Origin: Macrostomum hystrix
Lineage: Eukaryota; Animalia; Platyhelminthes
Direction: 5' to 3'
NCBI GenBank assembly: GCA_950097015.1
Contig: CATNEN010000011.1
Span: forward strand, 1,488,001 to 1,552,000
DNA: 64,000 nt
This document shows positions 22,301-47,539 of the stretch, piece by piece. Below the pieces are notes generated by a model, which saw nothing but the letters and a program-made list of their open reading frames with translations, was not told the origin of the DNA and made no database searches. The translations under genes were made by a program, and so were the position numbers. How positions within the stretch are numbered: position 1 is the stretch's first letter; every line of letters begins with the position of its first letter.

Positions 22301-25300
22301 TGGCCATTAACGGTTACGATTTTGCCCAACGGCCAAGAAAATCATGGAACAATGTCAATTAAACAGAATCTTACTTGAAGAGTTCTCTCCAAACAATCCA
22401 CCACCTGGCCCAACCAAATCTCGTTGACGCCTCGCCTATTTAACAGCGCCTTATGCTTAGCCGAATAACGCCAGGCAACATCAACCAGCTCCTCGTGCGA
22501 CATGGCGAATACAAAGCTGAGCGACTTCTTCCAGCCAGTCTCGTAGACCAGCGGCGCGTCGATTTGATTCTCGCACGGATCAACGTGCAGCCAGCGTTGC
22601 TCCAATTCACTGAATACTTCAACCCAGACGTGATCGGTGACGTCATAGACGAATCTAGTATCGAAGCCGAGAGCCCGGCAGAGCAGGTAGAAACAATTGG
22701 CCCACTCGCCGCAGCGCCCGTTGCGAGTTAGCAAAAGCTTCTCCGGATGATTGTAGCGAGGAAAACGTTCGACTCGCTGACACTGAGAGCAGTAGTGAGA
22801 CTCCACTCGAAGGGCGCCGTAGCGACGCTCCTCTTCGTTGGGCGGCAGATTGGCGTTGTTGCTGGACTGGCATTCCTGACCGCAGACGCTGCAGCTGGGA
22901 CTGTTGGTCCATTTGAAGAATTCGTTCTGCGGAATGTATTGAGGATCTTCTTAGACAGGCTAATTCTAAACACATTAATTAAGGGAAGCTTAAAGCAACG
23001 AAACTCAAAAGACAACCATACAGAACCCAGATGAGAGAATCCCTAGGGAACCCATAAAAGGAATACAAAAGCCACACACAATTGGACAAGGGAGAATCCT
23101 AAAGCTACAGAACCCACAAGAGTGAACCAAAAGTTATAGAACTCACAAAAGGGAATTCCAAAGTTACAAAAGCCACAAAAGGGAATTCCGAAGTTACAAA
23201 TGCTACAAAAGGGAATCCCAAAGTTACAAAAGCCACAAAAGGGAATCCCAAAGTTACAAAAGTCACAAAAGGGAATCCCAAAGCTACAGAAGCCGCAAAA
23301 GGGAATCCCAAAGTTACAAAAGTCACAAAAGGGAATCCCAAAGCTTCAGAAGCCACAAAAGGGAATCCCAAAGCTTCAGAAGCCACAAAAGGGAATTCCA
23401 AAGCTAAAAAAGCCACAGAAGGGAATTCAAAAATTACAAAAGCCACAAAAGGGAATCCCAAAGCTACAGAACCCACAAAATGGAATTCCGAAGTTACAAA
23501 TGCCACAAAAGGGAATTCCGAAGTTAAAAAAGCCACAAAAGAGAATCCCAAAGCTAAAAAAGCAACAGAAGGGAATTCCGAAGTTACAAAAGCCCCAAAA
23601 GGGAATTCCAAAGCTAAAAAAGCCCCAGAAGGGAATCCCAAAGCTACAGAACCCACAAAAGGGAATCCCAAAGCTACAGAACCCACCAAAGGGGAATCCA
23701 AAATTCTCTCAAACGAGAGGATGGAATTCCAAGCTAAAACAGAATCAAAGAAAATAAATTCAATAGCTTTATAAGGCATCTATGGGCTAAATCCAACAAT
23801 TATGCAACAAACCTTAAACCAAGCTGTCAGCTCGCACAGTAGCGCGTCTCTTTCAGCCGCCGGCACCTGAGCCTCAGTCAGCAGTTGTGATTGGCCGCTT
23901 TGCGACTGCAGCTGATTGCGCACTTTAGCTTCGGCAGCCTCCCGTAGGCGGGCCATCGGTACGCACTCCCGAGCTCGAGCCTTGAATTAATACACAATAG
24001 AAGTCGAATTAAAAGTTCCGAGAAGTGCTCAATAATAAAATTCTAGTTGTAACTAACCTGCAAACCGGGATCCTCATATTTAGGCATGCCGCTTAGGTGG
24101 GACATCAGACTAAACACCAGCTGGTGATTAGTAGCCCTTGGCGAGGCCAATGCCGGTATCATATTGACATAGATTCTAGGCAGATGCCGGGAATCGGTAA
24201 CTAGGCGAACTAGTTGATTGCGAATCTTGGCAACCCGTACTAGAGGACCCGGAGCCAGTTCGAAGTACTCGCCGCTATTGCTACTGCGGCCTGCGAAATT
24301 GGTGTTTTTCTAGCTGGTGAGGTTGCGGTGGCTTCAATGGTCTATAACAAAAATTATCTACTAGACACTCGCGCTGACTTTTGTTGTATGTTCAGCCCCG
24401 ATTGGGCCAGATGTGCAGTCGGCAGCACAGCCGCAGCTATTGCGCGGCGCATCTGAAGGCTGCGTACGACTGTTCAGTCCATTGACTGGGGAGACGCCAC
24501 GCCCACCTTCAATTACCCCAGCGGATGCTGGTACCCATTCAACATCTGGGTGAACTGAAGCAATAATGCAGAGTTAAGCGCCTAGCTGAAGTTCACAAGT
24601 TTTTCCAGTAGAGTCCGGAATCGAACCCCGGACCTTCAAGTCATGAGTCCGACGCCCTAACCACTAGGCTAAAACCCCAGCTTTAGACGCAGCAAACAGA
24701 TCTTCTTGGTACTTTTACTTTGAGTCGCTACTAGTCGCTTGCGGCGCTGAGTCCAACGGCGTCTAAAAAGGTAACGTAAACTAATAAAGTCCCTACCTGT
24801 CGTTCCGCTAGTATCGTCAGTAAATCCCATAGTGAATAGGCACTCAATGCCACCAGACACTGGTAGAAGCTTCTCAGACACCGTATTGCTGGACACTTTC
24901 AATCGGCGATATTTCACCTCCAACGGATGGGCCAAAATGTTGTCAGCAATGCGCAAAAGAATGTTAGCCGTTGTTCTAGCTAGGCTAGGCTCATTCTCTA
25001 GTAGAGCCGATACGCACTCGTCTAATTGCGGACGCAGCTGTTGAATTCTATTAATTAGCTCCAGCTGGTTGAAGCCGCGCTGACGCCAAACCTAAAATCA
25101 CATATTACTACTCATGAAATAGATATAGTAGTTATAGTAGGCTATGTTTACTATGGGTATGCTATAAACCATTTCTAGACGTGCGTTAAAATTCCTACAA
25201 TAAGCTCCTATTAGTATTAGCTGGAGGGCTGTGGGCAATGCAGGTTTTTTGGCGATAGTAGACCCGAAGCCTACGAGAGGCAACTCTTCTCATTCCGCTA

Positions 25301-25767: not shown

Positions 25768-25824
25768 CTGGCGACAGGGCTGGAATCAGAAATTTTTTTG
25801 GCTTAGACAGGACTTTTTAGTTGG

Positions 25825-27690
25825 CCTCAATACATCTGTGTGAGATAGAACAGGCCTAACTATGCCTGTGTGAGATGGAACAGGCCTAACTATGCCTGTG
25901 TGAGATAGAACAGGCCTAACTATGCCTGTGTGAGATAGAACTGGCCTAACTATACCTGTGTGAGACAGAACTGGCCTAACTATACCTGTGTGAGATAGAA
26001 CTGGCCTTAATATACCTGTGTGAGACAGAACTAGCCTAGCTATACCTGTGTGAGATAGAACTGGCCTAACTATACCTGTGTGAGACAGAACTGGCCTAAC
26101 TATACCTGTGTCAGACAGAACTGGCCTAACTATACCTGTGTGAGACAGAACTGGCCTAATTATACGTGGATGAAATAGAACTGGCCTAACTATACCTGTG
26201 TGAGATAGAACTGGCCTAACTATACCTGTGTGAGATAGAACTGGCCTAACTATACCTGTGTGAGACAGAACTGTCCTTACTATACCTGTGTGAGACAGAA
26301 CTGGCCTAACTATACCTGTGTGAGACAGAACTGGCCTAACTATACCTGTGTGAGATAGAACTGGCCTTACTATACCTGTGTGAGATAGAACTGGCCTAAC
26401 TATACCTGTGTGAGATAGAACTGGACTAACTATGCATGTGTGAGATAGAACAGGCCTAACTATGCATGTGTGAGATAGAACAGGCCTAACTATACCTGTG
26501 TGAGATAGAACAGGCCTAACTATACCTGTGTGAGACAGAACTGGCCTAACTATACCTGTGTCAGACAGAACTGGCCTAACTATACCTGTGTGAGATATAA
26601 CTGTCCTTACTATACCTGTGTGAGACAGAACTGGCCTAACTATACCTGTGTGAGATAGAACTGGCCTTAATATACCTGTGTGAGACAGAACTAGCCTAGC
26701 TATACCTGTGTGAGATAGAACTGGCCTAACTATACCTGTGTGAGACAGAACTGGCCTAATTATACGTGGATGAAATAGAACTGTCCTTACTATACCTGTG
26801 TGAGATAGAACTGGCCTAACTATACCTGTGTGAGATAGAACTGGACTAACTATACCTGTGTGAGATAGAACAGGCCTAACTATGCATGTGTGAGATAGAA
26901 CAGGCCTAACTATACCTGTGTGAGATAGAACAGGCCTAACTATACCTGTGTGAGACAGAACTGGCCTAACTATACCTGTGTGAGACAGAACTGTCCTTAC
27001 TATACCTGTGTGAGACAGAACTGGCCTAACTATACCTGTGTGAGACAGAACTGGCCTAACTATACCTGTGTGAGACAGAACTGGCCTAATTATACGTGGA
27101 TGAAATAGAACTGGCCTTACTATACCTGTGTGAGATAGAACTGGCCTAACTATACCTGTGTGAGACAGAAATGGCCTAACTATACCTGTGTGAGACAGAA
27201 CTGGCCTAATTATACGTGGATGAAATAGAACTGGCCTAACTATACCTGTGTGAGACAGAACTGGCCTAACTATACCTGTGTGAGACAGAAATGGCCTAAC
27301 TATACCTGTGTGAGATAGAACTGGCCTTACTATACCTGTGTGAGATAGAACTGGACTAACTATACCTGTGTGAGATAGAACAGGCCTAACTATGCATGTG
27401 TGAGATAGAACAGGCCTAACTATACCTGTGTGAGATAGAACAGGCCTAACTATACCTGTGTGAGACAGAACTGTCCTTACTATACCTGTGTGAGACAGAA
27501 CTGGCCTAACTATACCTGTGTGAGACAGAACTGGCCTAACTATACCTGTGTGAGACAGAACTGGCCTAATTATACGTGGATGAAATAGAACTGGCCTTAC
27601 TATACCTGTGTGAGATAGAACTGGCCTAACTATACCTGTGTGAGATAGAACTGGACTAACTATACCTGTGTGAGATAGAACTGTCCTTAC
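25825..27690. repeat. 30-bp minisatellite (TATACCTGTGTGAGATAGAACTGGCCTAAC), about 62 copies
   Basis: Visible array; source of the spurious 637-aa ORF. It fills the interval between candidate donors at 27706/27690 and the acceptor just before the ATG at 25767. Confidence 0.95.
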
Positions 27691-28145
27691 TTGTTGCAAA
27701 ACCTACCTTTTGATTGCAGTTTCTAATGTAGAAAAACTTTAAATAACAAATTTCATGATTAAAAAACTTTTAAATAGAAATTTGGACGAATATAAATTTG
27801 ACAAAACATCGTAGCTCTTTTAACGCATTCACTCAGTTAAATTTAATCAAACTCCTAGTCCGTAGATGGGTAACACAATTGAAAATAATCTACAAAACAG
27901 ACATTAGCCAAATAGAAAAAATGCAGTAAAAATAGACGAAAATTCTAACGATCTAACTAAATAAATAAACGAAAGTAGATTTCATATTTATTCTAGTTCA
28001 TAGTAAACTATAGTGTTAATATCTTAATTCTTAAGCAAAACAACATAGTAAATATTCTATAACAAGACTAACTGACAATTTTAATAAACGAACATTACTA
28101 ATTGCTAATTACTTATTACTATAGTTAATAATAATAAAACAACAG

Positions 28146-29329
28146 TCAAGGCTGAACAACAATCCAGCCAGACTGCCAAGCGTAGACGCCAAACACTACG
28201 CTTGTGAAGGCTAAGAATAGACCGGCGTTCCTCAACGCTGCACTATTGTCGGACGTGCCCGAACCCGCAGTCGTTGCATCGCCGCCAACGCTGCCCGCGC
28301 CTGTCACGCTGGACGACAACTCAGGAAAATAGGCTCGCTGAATGCGCTGACAAAAATCGATGAGGTTCTTGTGCTGACGCAATTTGCGCAACAAAGCTGG
28401 GGTATCAGAGCCTGCGCCTCCGCTATGATTGGCTGACGAAGCTAGCGGAGCTTTTAACATTGGCCATAGATAGCCGAATATCATGGCGTCTAGACAGCAG
28501 GGCCCGGTGCCGGATACGAAATAGCGCGATTGATCTAGCAGGCGAGATAGCTGCTCTAAGCAATCGATACCGTTGGCTGTTACCTGGGTGTGTAACATAA
28601 TTAAGGACTAAAAAGGGCCGTTTTAACATATTCTTTCACAATAGCCATATTTAATGATTGTACCAGGTGTACAGTTAGTAGTACAAAGAAGTAGCTACAT
28701 ATGTTCAGTTATTCGACTGGAGGAATCGACAGTGATATTTCTACCCATGAAAACTGGCTCTCTAAAAAAGCGAACCCGTGACCTCGGGCCTGAACACAAA
28801 CCTGATGCAAAAGTGCCTCTTCGCTGATTCGCGCTAGATCGTAGCCGAAAGCGTTTAACAAACGCTTCCTAGTAGCGTGATGCTTATAGACAGGATAGAC
28901 TAGAGAACAGGGCAGGCCTACCGCTTGAGCGAATGCCGGCCTAGTTAATCTAGTGTATACTCGAGACTCCAGCCACCATAACTGAGCAACAGCGGGGCCT
29001 AGCCTGGCCCTAGTTGATCGCATCAGGGCAGTCATTCTTACTAACTGATCCTCACTAAAATCATATTCAACTCCGTAATTCTCTTTGCGCAAATAGGCAA
29101 ACAGGCGCTCCAGATTGGCGCCACCTTTGATACAATTGCCGGCGTGTCTAAGGCGAGGAAGCTCAGATAGGCTACTAGGCGAGCTTGTAATTGAAGTGGC
29201 CACAGATGGTCGATTGTGAACTCGAATTTGTACCGGCGCTCCGGAGAATCGAATATAGGCTAGCACCGCTAAACAATCCGGATCTATTGAGGCTGAATCC
29301 CACTGGCTTGGCCAAACTGTTAGCTCCAT
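28146..29329 (-). CDS. Metaxin (MTX1/3-like); exons 29329-28802 and 28583-28146
   Basis: SIDPDCLAVLAYIRF, LFAYLRKEN, CLEQLSRLLDQSRYF..GPCCLDAMIFGYL and a C-terminal TM segment; phase-0 intron. Confidence 0.85.
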
Positions 29330-29519: not shown

Positions 29520-29835
29520 ACACGTCTTTGATCATGGTAATCATTACACATCTTTGATCAGCATGATGGTCATTACACATATTTGATCACGATGGTCATT
29601 ACAAATCCTTGATCAGCATGATGGTCATTACACACCTTTAATGATGATGGTCATTACACATATTTGATGATGATGGTCATTACACATCTTTGATGATGAT
29701 GGTCATTACACATATTTGATCATGATGGTCATTACATATCTTTAATTATGATGGTCATTACAAATCTTTGATCATGATTAGGTTGGGGGAATCATGTCAT
29801 ATAACGCGTCCCTAATCATGATTGATCATTACAAA
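29520..29835. repeat. ~27-30-bp minisatellite (CATGATGGTCATTACACATATTTGAT)
   Basis: Visible tandem array. Confidence 0.85.
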
Positions 29836-30162
29836 TTCCAAACTTACAGATAACTCCGAACGAGATTAAACTCGAATTTTTCAATCGAAATAACCATGAA
29901 ACAACACATGCTATTAAAGCATTTAACAAGACTTAAAAATGTTTTTGATAACAATATATTTTAGATAAATCAATAAGAAAAATGTAAAAAAGCTTGAAAA
30001 ACGTGAAAAACAGTACTTTGATTTACTTGTTGCCGCAGATGCCTTCTGCATTTTCATCGTCCTTTTTATGCCTCTAAAAATTGTAAATTGAAATACTTAG
30101 TTAAGCATTAATACTATAATGAACTAGAGTGAAAAACAAGATAAGAAAAAAAAAGATAAAAA

Positions 30163-30232
30163 TCAGAACATTTAAATTACTTTTCTCATTTATGCAGCAT
30201 CAATGGTGTAGTATAGATTATGATTGCATCAT
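30163..30232 (-). ncRNA. C/D-box snoRNA candidate, copy 1
   Basis: Box C ATGATGC; guide TCTATACTACACCA; D' TTGA; C' TGAGA; box D CTGA 89 nt from the 3' splice site. Confidence 0.7.
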
Positions 30233-30416
30233 ATATATTCAAGCATACTAACAACTCGAAAAATAATAATTAAAACGTACCAATTCATGCTACTGCTAAC
30301 ATGTTTTCAGCAGTAGTAGAGCATGCCGAAATCTAAAATTGTAAGAATCAGTTGTACTTTTTAAATACTTATCTTCTGGTTAAAAACTCAAACAAACACG
30401 ATACAATATAAAACTG

Positions 30417-30486
30417 TCAGATACATTATTTTTATCAATTGCATATAACATCTAAGGTGTAGTATAGAAATGTTTATTAATATCAT
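30417..30486 (-). ncRNA. C/D-box snoRNA candidate, copy 2
   Basis: Box C ATGATAT; guide TCTATACTACACCT; D' TAGA; C' TGATA; box D CTGA 84 nt from the 3' splice site. Confidence 0.65.
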
Positions 30487-30681
30487 AATTAGATTTCAAC
30501 CACTCAGCAGTTGTGTAGTTTGCATAATTATGTTAAAATTGAAAATCATAAAAAGTACTACTTACTTAGCAGGCAGGAAGACTTTTCCTGTTCATTTTAA
30601 TATCTGAAAGGAAAAAGAACAATTTTTTGAGAAAAATTTGGAAAAATATTTTAATTATTCTTCAACTACGAGTATTACAGT

Positions 30682-30754
30682 TCAGATAAAAATAGCTATT
30701 ATTTCTCATTTATATATTAACGATCAATGGTGTAGTATAGAAAAATGGCATCAT
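30682..30754 (-). ncRNA. C/D-box snoRNA candidate, copy 3
   Basis: Box C ATGATGC; guide TCTATACTACACCA; D' TTGA; C' TGAGA; box D CTGA 78 nt from the 3' splice site. Confidence 0.7.
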
Positions 30755-30936
30755 GTCGGATGTCTATATTGGCAGTTCAAAGGAAGTTATACTGTTATTT
30801 TTACCTCAAAATTGATGGCTCAAGTTAAGCTTGACGTTATTTTTATGCCTGAAATAAAAATAAAAGAGTATGTTTAAAAGGTGACGACAATACGATCATC
30901 TAAAATTATAGACGTACATAGTCGAAAGCAAAAACA

Positions 30937-31011
30937 TCAGTAAATGTAAATTTTTTTCATGGTGGTGATTACCAACATCAAAGGTGTAGTATAGATAAAA
31001 AAATCCATCAT
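30937..31011 (-). ncRNA. C/D-box snoRNA candidate, copy 4
   Basis: Box C ATGATGG; guide TCTATACTACACCT; D' TTGA; C' TGAAA; box D CTGA 88 nt from the 3' splice site. Confidence 0.7.
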
Positions 31012-31061
31012 ACATTTATGCAATTAAATTATCTACTATTTAATAATTAATAATAATAATT

Positions 31062-31353
31062 GATTACACCTGCCCCAATCGGGTCAGATGTGCAGCCGAC
31101 AGCACAGCCGCAGCTAATGCGCGGCGCATCTGAAGGCTGCGTACAGCTGTTCAGTCCATGGACTGGGGGGACGCCACACCACCTTCAATTATCCCAGCTG
31201 ATGCTGGTACCCATTTAACAGCTGGGTGAACTGAAGCAATGCAGAGTTAAGTGTCTTGCTAAAGGACACAAATTGTTCCAGTGGAGACGGGAATCGAACC
31301 CCCGACCTTCAAGTCGTGAGTCCGACGCCCTAACCACTAGGCTACAACCTCTC
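31062..31353 (-). mobile_element. SINE family B, full length, inserted in a snoRNA-host intron
   Basis: tRNA-like head GGTTGTAGCCTAGTGGTTAGGGCGTCGGACTCACGAC...GGTTCGATTCCC, CORE-like domain, (ATT)n tail. Confidence 0.9.
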
Positions 31354-31526
31354 TACTATTTAAAGAACATTGAATGAAGAAACTACATCTTACCAGATGT
31401 TAAAAGTCCATGGCTGCTGTTGAAAATTATCGTCATCTTAATTTGATCTAAAACCGAAATCAATTGTGTATTAGTAAACAGAAATGTCAAAACATAATCC
31501 TAAAAAAACAATAAAAGTTACATTTC

Positions 31527-31597
31527 TCAGTGTCTTCTTTTATTTTTTGTCACTTTAATTTTTTAGATATCAGTGGTGTAGTATAGAAAAGCATCAT
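31527..31597 (-). ncRNA. C/D-box snoRNA candidate, copy 5
   Basis: Box C ATGATGC; guide TCTATACTACACCA; D' CTGA; C' TGACA; box D CTGA 79 nt from the 3' splice site. Confidence 0.72.
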
Positions 31598-31750
31598 TGT
31601 TAAAACAATATACTCTTATTAAAACTTTAAGTCTGAAAACTTACCATCTCGTTAGTAGTAGATTATTTTGATGGCTAATAACAGCTGAAAAAATGTAATA
31701 GGTCACAGATGAAAACCTCAGTTATTTTAAAACGCGCAAACGCGTCTTTT

Positions 31751-31851
31751 TCAGGTCGAGTAAACACACTTCTTTCATGCTAAAATCATTAAAAGGCGTA
31801 ACAAAATATAAAAGAAGTAGTATAACTGCTTCAACTACTTTATTATATCAT
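31751..31851 (-). ncRNA. Degenerate sixth C/D-box candidate
   Basis: ATGATAT ... TTATACTACTTC (9/12 match to the guide) ... ATGATT ... CTGA 66 nt from the 3' splice site; no recognisable D' box. Confidence 0.35.
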
Positions 31852-32117
31852 TTTAGATAGGGCAATAGAGTACAGCTCACAATGTTTATTCAAACAGTTT
31901 ATCTAAAAGAAAAAATGCGCGATTAGAGTTACAAAGAGGCGCAACAAAAGTACGCTCTTATACTACTTAGTATTTTCTGGATACAGTTAAAACAGGCGAA
32001 AATTAAAAAGCACATAGAGAGCGAAGCATTATATACTAATAAAAGTAGGAATTAGTGCTGAATAAACTCTAGTTTAGTTGTAAAAAAATAATGCACGAAA
32101 ACTAACAAGCAATAAAA

Positions 32118-33702
32118 TCAATCAGTTGAGAACACTCTAGAAGCAATATCGTCAATTAGCCAGTCGATGCCTTCTAGCAAGTTTAATCCTGTCACAGCGG
32201 AGCAGCCAAAGATTCTACTGTGATGAGTCTTGACAGAGTCCAATTCCAATGCCGAAGAGATCTGCTCGGCGGTCAAAGCGCCAGGCAGATCTTGTTTATT
32301 GGCAAACACTAGCAGGCTGGCCCCGGCTAGACGTTCTTCGACTAGCAGCTGACCGAATTCCTGAATTTGTTTGTTTTGTACTTTTATTTTAGTTTTTAAT
32401 TCAGCGTCGACAAAATAAAGTCTAAAAACTTTTGTAACCCAGTGATTGGAGCTTTTAAACGCTTTTAAGATCGCAATTACAACAGAGCAAGAAGAGGATA
32501 GAGATTCACCCGAACGCCAACAGAAAGGCTCTATAAGTTTGAAGGGAACTGGTCACTTCTCAAATCCTCGACCCATCGTTCAAGCTTCGCTGCAACATGC
32601 GGGAAGCCATCATGAAACTTGTGCAGGGCGTGTGAGACCAACCAACGGACGAAGTTCATCAGCCATCCGATTTCCTGAAGCTCAGCGTACCTGCTGCCGG
32701 TGCCACAACTCAATGTCAACTCAACTCAGGCGTCAATCAACTGTAAGCAAGACACAACATTCCTCGTACATTAATGTTGTACATCAAGTTACATGAGCAT
32801 ACTAGAGATTGTAGCCTAGTGGTTAGGGCGTCGGACTCACGACATGAAAGTCGGGGGTTCGATTCCCGACTCCACTGGAACAATTTATGCCCTATAGCAA
32901 GATACTTAACTCTGCATTGCTTCAGTTCACCCAGCTGTTAAATGGGTACCAGCATTGGCTGGGATAATTGAAGGTGGATGTGGCGTCCCCCAGTCCATGG
33001 ACTGAACAGCTGTAGGCAGCCTTCAGATGCGCCGCGCAATAGCTGCGGCTGTGCTTTCGGCTGCACATCTGACTCAATTGGGGCAGGTGTAATCAATTAT
33101 AATTATTATCAATTATTATACATTAGCATGGATCCGCAACACGAGGACACATTATAATTTGTTAAGCAGACAATGTCAGAGGACTTGTTATGCGATTCGT
33201 GTCTTTCTACCAATCACAAAATTAAGGCGTACTGGGTAAGCGTACACTCCTTGACGGTAGCAAATCAGGGCAGATGCACACGTCCCCGTGTGTGTGCATA
33301 CCTGCGTACTTATCCGTACGCATAAAAATAATGTACCAGTGCACACACACCCCTGAAAGTAAGTACAAATTATCAGTGGTGAAATGTCACCTGTTTGCAA
33401 TCAGCCATGCGCATCTGATCGGCGCTATCAACCACCCAGACTAGGCCGTCCGTGGCTTCGAAATAGTTGCGCCAATAGGAGCGCAGCGATTTCTGGCCGC
33501 CAACGTCCCACACGTTAAGCCGGAAGCCGCGATGCTCCAGAGTCTTAATTGAAAAGCCCAACGTCGGCGACACTTCGTCAATGTCGTCGCCGTTGAACTT
33601 CTTCACTAGCGTTGTCTTGCCAGCATTGTCCAGGCCGAGAATTAGGATGCGAACTTCTTTCTCTTTCTCTTTTAATTTCTTCAATATAGAATAGAAGCCC
33701 AT
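32118..33702 (-). CDS. ARL2: ADP-ribosylation factor-like protein 2; exons 33702-33391 and 32360-32118 (184 aa)
   Basis: [41 protein letters not shown]; phase-0 intron; length matches ARL2. Confidence 0.93.
32804..33115 (+). mobile_element. SINE family B, full length, in the ARL2 intron
   Basis: tRNA-like head, CORE-like block at 32897-32946, AT-rich tail. Confidence 0.9.
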
Positions 33703-34814: not shown

Positions 34815-37263
34815 TTAAGCGGGCGGACTTGGCCTCTGCTCCTGGAGTCTCTGCCAGGCTATGGATGCGGCGGCAACCATTGGCAAAGACGGAGACGGCT
34901 GAGGCGGCATAGGGAACACTGGCTGGGCCAGGGCTTCAAATATCAGGTCCGGATGGGCGCCAAGCTGCATCAGGCGCAGTCTGAGTCCGGCGCGTTGAGC
35001 ATTGGCGCCGCGCCGACGAAGCCAAGCAACAATCCTAGGCAGGATTAATCGGAGGCACATTGATTCTAGCCTGATTGGTGCACCAGGAAACCAGCAGCTG
35101 TAGAGAGCGTCTGAACGTGACAGCCTAAAATTTTTGTTGTTAGTAAATGGATAATTTAAGCTGGCGAGGCTGCTGATACGAAGCAAAAACTTCAAGAAAC
35201 TAACCGATATCTAGAAGAGACTGGTTCAAATTTTTTAGAATTATATTATAAATTACATCGTTTTATCTGATCTGACTGTACATAGTAATAATTGATTACA
35301 TCTGACCAAATAGGGCCAGATGTGCAGCCGACAGCACAGCCGCAGCTACTGCGCGGCGCATCTGAAGGCTGGGTACTGCTGTTCAGTCCATGGACTGGGG
35401 GGACGCCACACCCACATTCAATTATACCAGCTAATGCTGGTACCCATTTAACAGCTATGTGAACTGAAGCAATGCAGAGTTAAGTGTCTAGCTATAGGAA
35501 AAAAATTGTTTCGGGAATCGAACCTCCGACCTTTAAGTCGCGAGTCAGAAGCTCTAACCACTAGGCTACAACCTAGCCTAGTTAAAAAATAGTAAAAAAA
35601 CTGCAGAATTAAGAGATTCAGGACAATTAGTGGGGCTGTATTGCTCTATTATTATAAATTTACTTGCTTACCTGCTAAAAACCATATAATTATTTTTAAA
35701 ATTAATATTTTGTCTTTCATTAATTGCTTTTTGTTTTTTTTCTATGCATTTATCAAGGAAGGACTAACTCAAAGACTTAAAACATCAGCAACAAAGAATA
35801 GAAAATTGCAATTTCTATATACTGTTACCTGCCAGCTCTATCAAGAACAACACCGCCAAAGATGAACGCCTGACCAGCAGGTGTAACGGCGGCCGCGTGA
35901 AAATAAGTTGGCCTAGGCAGGCTAAATGCCGATCGATGCCAAACAGCAGTTGGCAGGTGCAGATACCAGACATCGCCTAGGGGAGAATTATCCTCTGTAC
36001 AACCGCCTGACAGCATTAGCCAATCGCCGTGCAGTAGACAGGCGTGGCACCGTCTAGCCTGCGGAATTCCGGCGCTATTCCTATTATTATCGTCGGCATT
36101 TTCATTGTCAGACGGAGTAGACGAACCGCTAGTTGCTAGCCAAGACCAGGTGTGCGTTTCTAAACAGAATACAGCCAGGCGATCTAGTTTGCAGACAGAC
36201 AACGACGTACCGCCTCCAACTATGTATAGTCGGCCGCGCCAGTGTACAGTTTCGTGTCTGTAGCGCCTACTAGGCGGACCTGTCCACCTATTGACTGCGG
36301 CATCGTTATTAGCCTCATCTGGCGGATCGTCGTAATTTTCTAGAGCCCTAGCTGGCAACGATGGTGTAGGATCCAGTGAGCGCCATTCCCAAGTGTCCGT
36401 GTTTAAGGCGTGCATTGAATTAGTGTAGACATGACCGCTTGTGCCACCGAATTGATAGATTGTACGCGATCCGTCTGGATGCTTCACTAAGGTGAACGAA
36501 TGGCCGTACACCTGTAATTGTAACCGGTTTTTTATATGTCAGGCTTACAAATTAAGGCACACTGCCTGACGATGAGAGCGAAAGTCAGAGCAGATGTACA
36601 CACCTGCGTGAGCGTGTGCATGTGTACGGTATTTGTGTCCGTGTGTGCTCAGGAGTCAGCAAAATGGGCAGAATTGCCTCCTTGCTGGTCTATTGTAACC
36701 AAATGATGTGCCATTGCCCCGCAGCCCTCCTGCAATTATTACGAGATATTAATATTATTCGGTCATAAATCACTCGTCACCTTCTTAGGCCTTCCGTCGC
36801 GTCCGCCAACGTGGGTCAGCGCCACTTCGGACCATTGCATGGTGCGCAGGCAAAGTCGATGCAATCGCCTACTGCGTCGAATGCCGAACGGCGTCGCGGT
36901 GCCGCCGTGCACCAGGAGATAGGGCGGGTCCAATAGTGCCGCGTGGGAGGCCAATTCGGCGGGCATGTCGCCGGTAGTCACTAATCGACGCCATTGGCCG
37001 CTGGCAATGTTGAATTGCCAGACCTCTTCAAATAGGCGACCGCCGACTTCATTCTCGGCTGGATGAAAGCCGCCAACAAGCCAGAGATTGTGCGCGCCAG
37101 CTAGAAGGCGATGACCGGAGCGAGCGTGCGGCCAGGCGCCAACTGGCTCATTGTCGGCCGCTCCGTCACCTTCGCAACGACCAAGAATGTCAACGTATTG
37201 CATGCGGTGCTGGCAAAACTTTTGCGGATGATGCTGCTGCTGTTGACTTTGGTGACGCTGCAT
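34815..37263 (-). CDS. KLHDC10: Kelch domain-containing protein 10 (slim-like); exons 37263-36781, 36511-35829, 35124-34815
   Basis: ARSGHR, MPAELAS, HGGTATPFG, YGH...FGGTSGHVYTN, RYRHE...GGGTS, ARRCH and TYFHAAAVTPAG are collinear with KLHDC10; intron phases 0 and 2 match. Confidence 0.88.
35293..35572 (-). mobile_element. SINE family B copy in a KLHDC10 intron
   Basis: Homologous to the other family B copies. Confidence 0.85.
36554..36741 (+). mobile_element. 5'-truncated SINE family A copy in a KLHDC10 intron
   Basis: ACACTGCCTGACGATGAG...GCAGCCCTCCTGCAATTATTA matches 15640-15813. Confidence 0.8.
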
Positions 37264-44918: not shown

Positions 44919-47539
44919 GCTTTTTTATTTTTGATAATAGTAGTGCACAATAAACATACCAAATTTTATTGATTCACTTTTTCAACCAGAAAATTTGGCA
45001 ATGTCTATTTGTCCCATTTAAAGATGTTATGTTTTTTAGTCAATTGTGTGGATAAGTGCAGTAGAACATGCTAAAAAGCTAATTTAACAGTCATTACAAT
45101 TTTATTTTAATATGAATATATAATAAATAAACCTAGCATTTAAAAGAAAGCAAAAACATAATTAAAAACATAAAAATAAATACATACCTGACTATCAAAC
45201 GATAGCTCGCCATTAGAAATTTCAACTTTGCTGTGTAAACTTTGCTTTTGTTGGTGCTCCTCAATTTCAGAAAGCTTCTCTTTCTTAATGGTGAACTGAA
45301 AAACTGATTCGGAATAGTTTTGTCTGGGCTCACTAATCTGAGAAGTACTTGCGACAGATGCTGATGCAGGGTTTATCATAGTTTTATGATAGGATTCATA
45401 GGCAACCGTATGTAATACTACTTACACGTAACAATTACACTAGAAAAGCAAAAGGCTCCAAACGCATGTAGACTAGCTACTAGAAATTGGATAAGTTACT
45501 GTTCGTTTTGACCATAGCCGTTAAAAAGGGCTTACATTAACTAGACTCTATATAACGTAAAAAGGCAAAGTCTAAGTCAAAGGCTGTTTCGTCTATGTAT
45601 GATAGGCCTAAGTCGATTATAAAGATTATAAGATTAAAGATTAATCTAGGGCCTAACCCTGTTCCAGTCTCAATTTAAATTTATTGTACAGGTTTACAAA
45701 TTTTGCAGCTTTAAGTATTTAAAATATATATATTTCTTTTTCTTATATTTTATTTACAATCCTTTTTCTGTTAAACAATCTACTTTGCTGCAAATCTAAA
45801 TCGCTTTGTTTTGCATCACTGCAGTGCAGGCTTTAGTTTAGCGGCAATACGAATAGCTTACTCTATGCTATTTTTCTTCGAAGTCTTTATATCCATTCCA
45901 TCTGCGATATGATTTACTTTAGAATAATGTTCTTAGTATTTCAAATTTCCGCTTGGACGTTTATAGGGCAGTAATAAGTGTAATTCAGAAACATGATTAC
46001 TTTGATTAGCTAATCGCCCATTTTTATTTGCTTTTTGTTTCGCTTGATAGGCAAACTAAGAATGAACAGCAGGACTGCACGAGCGGTGTAGTATAGACTA
46101 TAGGCCTAACTAACTACCGAGGTGATGTCCAGTGAAACAGTAGGACTATCGGATGTTTTAAGTTTAATAATGATAAAAATACCATAATTCGTGTTATCTA
46201 AAGTAGCTTTTTACTCAGATACTATATATAAAACGCGTCTGTTTCCCTGTTTTATCCAGTACCATTTTCACACTTTGTCAATCTCATAGCTTGCTCTTGC
46301 GAACTAACTCATAACTACACTGCAGCATCCTCGTAATCTATCGGGCTGTTAAACTAGCCAATCAGGCTATGCTAGTCCGAGAATAATTAAAGCAACATTA
46401 GGCCCTATCAAGCTACATTAATTAATTATAGCCTACACATATCATGTTCTAAAGAAGTAAAAACTAATATTTGTGGATTATCACCTCATTTATTTAACTA
46501 TATAGACCCTGTTTCTTGGTTTTGGGATGACAAGCATTTTATGGAAGATTTCTTATTGTAATAACCATCATTCAAAACTTAAGCTATTCTATTTTGCTTC
46601 TAAATAAAATTGGGACCTTGTCCTTCTTCATTTTTAGTAGATAAATAGTATTTCAAATTGTCAATAAGAATGCCAACAGTAAAATAAATTATTCCAACAT
46701 TATAGCATTAACATCTCATGTCTTTTGATTTCATTTTTAGTTACTTGTATGTAATCATTTTAACTCATTTTAAATCACTTTAGGTTGACTTAAGTGACAC
46801 CCCCTCAAGTTTTTAAAGACCATCAGCTTCAATGGTAGGCCCTACAGGTGCAGCAAATTATCATCAACTGAAAGTACAATGCTTACCATTGCAAAGTATT
46901 ATATTGGTATTGAAGTTTAGGAATTTGTAGAAATTAGTTAAGTTTTTTTTCTTTATATATTGTAGTTTGGGATCACTATTAATTCTCTTAAAAAGTTGCA
47001 TTAAATGATTGCCTTCCAAAATAGCTATGGAAATGGTCTCGAATATAATTTAATATAATATATTCCCATTTAACTATTGTAAACTATGTCTAGTTCTTTT
47101 GTTTGAACTGTGATTTTTAAGTATAGCTGAAAGCCTGAAAAATTCAAAAGGTGATCTTTAACTAAAACTTGTATGTTGAATAATTATTGTCATCTAAAAG
47201 TTTGCCAATTACTTTATGGCTTTAAGTCATTTCACTTTTCAGACTTCGACTTAATAGTGATTAGATGCTTTATAGAAGTAGATAAAAAGTATTTATTCTT
47301 TATTGTCAGTGACATGTGTTAAAAAAGTAATAGGCCTATGCTAGTTGTTTTCATTTGGCATAAGGTATATGCTCAGCTTTTAATATTATTTTTTAGGATT
47401 TCATGTCTTTTAATGATTTATTTAGCAAATTATTCATAATAATAAAATTGATGATCAACTACATCTAAACAAGAAAAACCAGGATAAAATTATTTAACGA
47501 CTTTATTGAATTTCTTTTATTTTCAGCTCAGAAAGCCAC

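Follow-up and report, generated by a model that had tools for sequence, protein, structure and literature searches.

Five predicted box C/D snoRNAs with one shared 28S rRNA guide in the ARL2–metaxin interval of Macrostomum hystrix

Which role, if any, can be assigned to the AT-rich interval that separates the ARL2 and metaxin genes of the flatworm Macrostomum hystrix, in which a short unit recurs on the minus strand? In the present study we have analysed a stretch of 64,000 nucleotides (nt) from this genome (assembly GCA_950097015.1, contig CATNEN010000011.1, positions 1,488,001 to 1,552,000 of the forward strand), hereafter the window, whose numbering is used throughout for its features. An initial annotation, made from the letters of the window, had described the interval as a set of five paralogous intronic box C/D RNAs with one invariant guide. 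[quoted passage not shown] The family is new and apparently lineage-restricted, without a counterpart in Rfam, while the class itself is well known.

The array and its 28S rRNA target

Five elements of 70-75 nt with the layout of box C/D snoRNAs are located on the minus strand at 30163-31597, in the interval between the ARL2 and metaxin genes (Table 1). The AT-rich character attributed to this interval is evident from its GC content, which is 31.8% against 43.6% in the window. The common part of the elements is the 13-mer TCTATACTACACC, present in five minus-strand copies at 30205, 30456, 30729, 30983 and 31575; 0.06 matches are expected by chance, and the observed count was attained in none of 100 shuffles. 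The start-to-start distances of the 13-mer are 251, 273, 254 and 592 bp, the last of them being due to the insertion of a transfer RNA (tRNA)-derived short interspersed element (SINE) at about 31060-31350, which lies 5' of snoRNA copy 2 and enlarges intron 2 to about 545 nt while leaving the distance between box D and the 3' splice site unaltered.

All five elements have the same order of parts. A C box and a spacer of 4-12 nt precede the 13-mer, which is separated by a single nucleotide from the D' box; then come a TGA(N)A resembling box C', an AT-rich part that has drifted between copies, and finally a D box. The C box is ATGATGC in three copies, ATGATGG in one and ATGATAT in copy 4; the D' box is TTGA in three copies, with CTGA and TAGA found once each; the C'-like boxes read UGAGA, UGAUA, UGAAA or GUGAC, and box D is CTGA in 5/5 copies. 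In the five introns, box D and the acceptor that follows it are 79, 88, 78, 84-85 and 89 nt apart. The five paralogous elements with one invariant 13-mer are thus confirmed, with their boxes in the right order, and the earlier description of them (a unit of about 260 bp, elements of 70-75 nt, and in all five copies a box D placed 78-89 nt from the 3' splice site) proved accurate.

Averaged over the alignment columns, the paralogues share 48% identity across whole units and 62-67% within the snoRNA bodies, and the 13-mer is invariant in 5/5. A family sequence model, built from nine copies of two species and searched against the whole genome, recovered the five members of the array alone, with 35.9-45.8 bits, the next candidates reaching about 20 bits (E 0.14-0.2); this search scores the best candidates only, and weak diverged copies could escape it.

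The second species is Macrostomum lignano, in which ARL2, a spacer of 3.1 kb, metaxin and PNGase follow each other on one strand. On the coding strand of this spacer lie two elements of C/D type, which recur on two more homeologous contigs, making three in total (NIVC01000434, NIVC01000080 and NIVC01003691). Copy A reads ATGATGC-N8-TCTATACTACACC-A-TTGA... and copy B has the sequence GTGATGT...TCTATACTACACC-T-CGGA...CTGA. In one of the three contigs, copy B shows an A-to-G change that converts an A-U pair into a G.U pair with the same target. When the whole ARL2-metaxin intervals of both species were compared by BLASTN, three things aligned, namely the coding exons, the SINE family and the segment comprising the C box, guide and D' box. 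The identity between species is 73-75% for the two coding exons flanking the spacer, and 86% over 42 nt for the C-box-guide-D' segment of window copy 5, the most similar one, and M. lignano copy A. When nine sequences from both species are aligned, the guide, the GAT of D' and the TGA of box D remain without any change, a pattern of purifying selection on a guide RNA that fits neither neutral decay nor gene conversion nor a repeat family.

The complement of the guide was found in the ribosomal DNA (rDNA) of the species itself. Each 28S has one exact 12-nt complement, GGTGTAGTATAG, which lies on the sense strand and occupies nt 2775-2786 of the large-subunit (LSU) rRNA, and it recurs at a spacing of about 11.7 kb on contigs C15, C17 and C42, in units that Rfam calls as rDNA, with small-subunit (SSU) rRNA, 5.8S rRNA and a complete LSU rRNA on L032. 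At the target the 28S of the species reads GAGAGGUGUAGUAUAGGUGGGAG, the exact complement of the guide, in the context ...GAGACAUGAGAGGUGUAGUAUAGGUGGGAGC... The pairing over LSU 2775-2787 consists of a minimum of 12 Watson-Crick pairs and one G.U pair, the latter formed by the 5' U of the 13-mer with G2787; copies 2 and 4 gain an additional A-U pair at position 1, and the duplex of copy 2 is extensible to 20 positions with 15 Watson-Crick and five G.U pairs. Shuffled guides equalled the observed 28S score in 0-1 of 200 trials. Moreover, the species' 28S departs from the Rfam eukaryote consensus at U2782 and G2786 within the duplex, and the guide fits the species' base at both positions. The initial annotation had taken its LSU rRNA target from a consensus segment and had asked for a complement of at least 10 nt in an RNA of the species; the exact complement now found in its own 28S has 12 nt and is better than that consensus.

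The fifth nucleotide upstream of D' is a C opposite G2778 of the 28S, in the same register in 11/11 copies of both species. Given this C opposite G2778 in every copy, methylation of the G in GGU[G]UAG (Gm2778) is therefore predicted, and the site deduced earlier by the D'+5 rule is upheld. G2778 corresponds to position 2460 of the Rfam LSU model. Ahead of GUGAAAUACCAC there is a long helix, which we take to be H76 at the L1-stalk base, and G2778 belongs to its 5' strand. The guides upstream of box D differ in each copy and show no complementarity to 28S, 18S, 5.8S or U2 small nuclear RNA (snRNA) above shuffled controls, which points to single-guide snoRNAs, in which the other guide position, next to box D on its upstream side, is unconstrained and probably without function.

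We infer expression, assembly into a ribonucleoprotein and methylation from the sequence, and the following course can be envisaged. Each copy would be freed from an RNA polymerase II pre-RNA by splicing or debranching, with subsequent exonucleolytic trimming, and would assemble with Snu13, Nop56, Nop58 and fibrillarin. The D' guide 5'-UCUAUACUACACC-3' would pair with 28S nt 2775-2787, and fibrillarin would 2'-O-methylate G2778, the fourth base of GGUGUAG in what is presumably helix H76, at the L1-stalk base.

Several observations weigh against this assignment. The terminal stems are weak, with flank duplexes of +0.2 to -4.6 kcal/mol, and copy 2 alone has a convincing one. The last base of the C box is C, G or U and not the A of the consensus RUGAUGA, copy 4 having AUGAUAU, and the D' boxes are degenerate (UUGA and UAGA, and CGGA in M. 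lignano), although degenerate D' and C' boxes are common for internal boxes of C/D snoRNAs. Copy A of M. lignano carries UUGA at the expected box D. In Rfam the elements match no snoRNA family, either at the gathering threshold or at E<=10, the only matches being a tRNA-like SINE and noise. Furthermore, the human and Drosophila methylation maps are silent at this nucleotide. Its human equivalent is about G3937 in the older and about G3958 in the newer numbering, in which Gm3923, the site of the human snoRNA SNORD111, becomes Gm3944; the Drosophila gap between Gm2774 and Gm3152 spans, by our reading, the G2778 region, and we know of no 2'-O-methylated nucleotide (Nm) at the yeast equivalent, about G2454. 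The human catalogue has no site between Gm3944 and Gm4042 and lists nothing at the equivalent of G2778 (PMC11550049), in agreement with the earlier remark that the site is not a recognised vertebrate one, and the Drosophila map has no site between Gm2774 and Gm3152 (PMC11014333). As neither human nor Drosophila has a known Nm at the corresponding position, methylation there lacks a precedent.

The host transcript and its neighbourhood

Six segments of 40, 54, 44, 38, 52 and 47 nt surround the elements, each with a pyrimidine-rich AG before it and a GT donor after it (Table 1). At the level of the sequence this bears out the earlier proposal of short exons (38-54 nt) with good splice sites and one element per intron. 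The candidate exons were judged singly for coding potential, and the stops in all three frames of exons 3, 4 and 5 mean that no protein is readable across the chain.

Table 1. Predicted snoRNAs, candidate exons and flanking coding exons in the window
Feature	Position	Strand	Remarks
snoRNA copy 1	31527..31597	minus	71 nt; C ATGATGC, TCTATACTACACC+A, D' CTGA, D CTGA; 38.9 bits
snoRNA copy 2	30937..31011	minus	75 nt; C ATGATGG, guide+T, D' TTGA, D CTGA; 43.1 bits
snoRNA copy 3	30682..30754	minus	73 nt; C ATGATGC, D' TTGA, C' TGAGA, D CTGA; 45.8 bits
snoRNA copy 4	30417..30486	minus	70 nt; C ATGATAT (weakest), D' TAGA, C' TGATA, D CTGA; 35.9 bits
snoRNA copy 5	30163..30232	minus	70 nt; C ATGATGC, D' TTGA, C' TGAGA, D CTGA; 42.4 bits
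candidate exon 1	31645..31684	minus	40 nt; pyrimidine-rich AG acceptor; donor GTAAGT
candidate exon 2	31394..31447	minus	54 nt; donor GTAAGA
candidate exon 3	30805..30848	minus	44 nt; donor GTAAAA; stops in all three frames
candidate exon 4	30566..30603	minus	38 nt; donor GTAAGT; stops in all three frames
candidate exon 5	30281..30332	minus	52 nt; donor GTACGT; stops in all three frames
candidate exon 6	30027..30073	minus	47 nt; then GTAAAT donor; resembles exon 3 as a paralogue (repeat family D2)
ARL2 last coding exon	32118..32309	minus	directly upstream of the array; AATAAA at 31890 and 31844
metaxin first coding exon	28797..29329	minus	ATG at 29329; downstream of the array

From this layout the host could be an independent non-coding RNA, a 3' extension of ARL2, the 5' untranslated region (UTR) of metaxin, or an operon spacer resolved by spliced leader (SL) trans-splicing. 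An independent non-coding host gene of the GAS5, UHG or dUhg kind seems plausible, and the other three have to be considered because the acceptor of exon 1 is without a donor, the neighbours lie on the same strand and an SL is present in the genome.

The strongest challenge to an independent host is that there is none, the array forming part of a polycistronic ARL2-metaxin unit (as an operon spacer or outron), of introns in an extended ARL2 3' UTR, or of introns in the metaxin 5' UTR; to our mind this stands just short of an even balance. The snoRNAs would then be real, as by-products of the processing of the pre-messenger RNA, and this alternative touches the host only and not the function of the snoRNAs. 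It draws on the serial arrangement of ARL2, the array, metaxin and PNGase, all of them minus-strand features and likewise ordered and co-oriented in M. lignano, and on candidate exon 1, whose acceptor, about 160-205 nt past the ARL2 AATAAA signals, has no evident cis donor. At the other end of the array exon 6 terminates in the donor GTAAAT, with acceptors just upstream of the metaxin ATG. In M. lignano, about 30% of genes are trans-spliced and about 15% lie in operons whose spacers measure close to 100 bp (PMC8629364), and the exact 35-nt SL of that species, its sequence taken from the same source, was found in the M. hystrix genome. Considering these data (PMC8629364), candidate exon 1 may represent an SL trans-splice acceptor, since its acceptor is without an evident upstream cis donor. 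The comparison with M. lignano adds that the candidate donors drawn on one of its homeologous contigs (L040) are absent from the two others (L041 and L042); the candidate exons do not align to M. lignano by BLASTN. On the other hand, the six segments retain GT donors and pyrimidine-AG acceptors despite units at about 48% identity, a persistence that suggests selection and favours real cis-splicing of a multi-exon RNA. Nine ATGs in the micro-exons would burden a metaxin 5' UTR, and the gap of about 700 nt between the array and metaxin includes a minisatellite.

We further consider a bolder and rather doubtful proposal, in which Gm2778 would be a modification specific to flatworms or to Macrostomum, with the guide tuned to lineage-specific bases, and the spacer of an ARL2-metaxin operon resolved by SL trans-splicing, and not a host gene of the classical type, would give rise to the array. 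If true, the processing of the operon would double as snoRNA biogenesis.

As to the neighbouring genes, the metaxin exon has a single strong database match, an M. lignano protein with 83% identity, and a search for contigs on record encoding an ARL2 open reading frame of the window gave no match. Repeats are found at several places around them. The tRNA-derived SINE family is represented in the window at 31060-31350 (minus), 24609-24678 (minus), about 32774-33100 and about 35290-35560, and it also occurs in M. lignano, at non-orthologous positions and with about 82% identity. The minisatellite of about 30 bp, with GTGTAATGACCATCATGATCAAAGAT-like units, occupies 29520-29820 (minus), between the array and the start of metaxin. 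A 30-nt tandem repeat at 25786-27699, between metaxin and PNGase, gives rise to a spurious open frame of 637 amino acids made of SHTGIVRPVL units.

The exact 35-nt SL is present once per rDNA unit, on the rRNA strand and about 2.3 kb upstream of 18S. Its sites lie at G000:C15:9730-9764 (minus) and every 11.7 kb on C15, C17 and C42, as well as at L031:6731, and 149 matches at up to 3 mismatches were counted genome-wide. With an SL in every rDNA unit, the SL RNA gene seems to be linked to the rDNA spacer.

Repeats, chance matches and U2 snRNA as alternatives

It is highly improbable, in our judgement, that the array is a non-functional decaying tandem repeat, or a captured antisense rDNA fragment, in which C/D-like words have arisen by chance. 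An AT-rich interval makes TGA, CTGA and ATGAT words common, the weak terminal stems would fit a non-functional repeat, and a lone 13-mer exists outside the array, at 46085. However, the identity with rDNA ends at 12 nt on either side, and the array is therefore no rDNA fragment; the invariant guide amid drifting flanks argues against neutral decay and gene conversion; and a second species keeps the same RNA at the syntenic site, though its spacer otherwise does not align. The genome-wide model search argues likewise against a dispersed repeat family in the M. hystrix genome.

Other occurrences of the guide were inspected and set aside. The outlying copy of TCTATACTACACC, at 46085-46097 (minus), lacks C and D boxes and reaches 11.8 bits with the family model, and is probably unrelated. 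A decayed sixth unit at 31810-31860 is backed by neither the alignment nor the family model. The further genomic matches of the 12-mer comprise one rDNA-like match on C1, three in a 66-bp satellite on C5, and isolated ones without boxes. In that satellite (G000:C5:3311453-3311596) the units hold CTATACTACACC by coincidence. A scan of metagenomes for a C box, the guide and D' returned two contigs with an unrelated repeat and without a D box, which were judged to be chance.

The least probable reading is that the elements are box C/D small Cajal body-specific RNAs aimed at the branch-point recognition region of U2 and not at rRNA: the initial annotation had pointed to a complementarity between the guide core AUACUACAC and GUGUAGUAU, as metazoan U2 usually reads, and had counted a 9-bp match, but the three U2 genes read here (147, 147 and 146.5 bits) all have AAGUGUAGUUUCUG, the search for a duplex of at least 10 bp with the species' own U2 ended at 7 contiguous bp since this U2 reads GUGUAGUUU, and the best U2 score of the D' guide is never above that of the 28S, which offers 12-15 Watson-Crick pairs, so that with only 7 contiguous pairs possible the idea is very unlikely.

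The U2 genes (L033:1501-1570, L034 and L035) have GUAGUU as their branch-point recognition sequence and not the usual GUAGUA.

Relation to known methylation sites and snoRNA hosts

With the array of predicted guide RNAs for 28S G2778, a clade of regeneration models, for which no map of rRNA modifications was found in the literature, gains a C/D snoRNA family that is well supported and seems to be restricted to the lineage. It predicts a new 2'-O-methylation in the L1-stalk helix, near to but distinct from Gm3923, which is developmentally variable in vertebrates, and the locus offers a convenient test case for the production of snoRNAs in a genome with SL trans-splicing and operons. The understanding of how C/D snoRNAs work is unchanged by it.

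SNORD111 (RF00611) resembles the members of the array in being an intronic box C/D snoRNA with a D' guide on the same 28S helix, which we presume to be H76 at the L1-stalk base. SNORD111, also named HBII-82, directs Gm3923 of the human 28S by means of a 16-nt 5' guide and is hosted by SF3B3 (PMC1636440); the primer assaying Gm3923 anneals to AAUAAGUGGGAGG... (PMC6124571), a position that places Gm3923 in the same helix as G2778. Unlike in the array, its consensus guide, CAUGUCUCUUCU followed by CUGA, pairs with GAA[G]AGACAUG at position 2446 of the Rfam LSU model, against 2460 for the array; the target of SNORD111 thus lies 14 nt upstream and is a different nucleotide. The RF00611 model gave no match on the array, and in a search of the whole genome it returned two sub-threshold matches elsewhere, one of them overlapping a tRNA.

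With respect to its organisation, the array is comparable to the Uhg genes of Drosophila and to GAS5, UHG/SNHG1 and SNHG5 of vertebrates, in which several paralogous C/D snoRNAs are carried, one per short intron, by hosts whose exons are short, non-coding and unconserved. Drosophila also shares with it the use of isoform sets, named a-d, for single sites (Table 1 of PMC11014333). The array differs from these hosts in that its own host is putative and possibly belongs to an operon resolved by SL trans-splicing, and in that one and the same guide is carried by all five copies.

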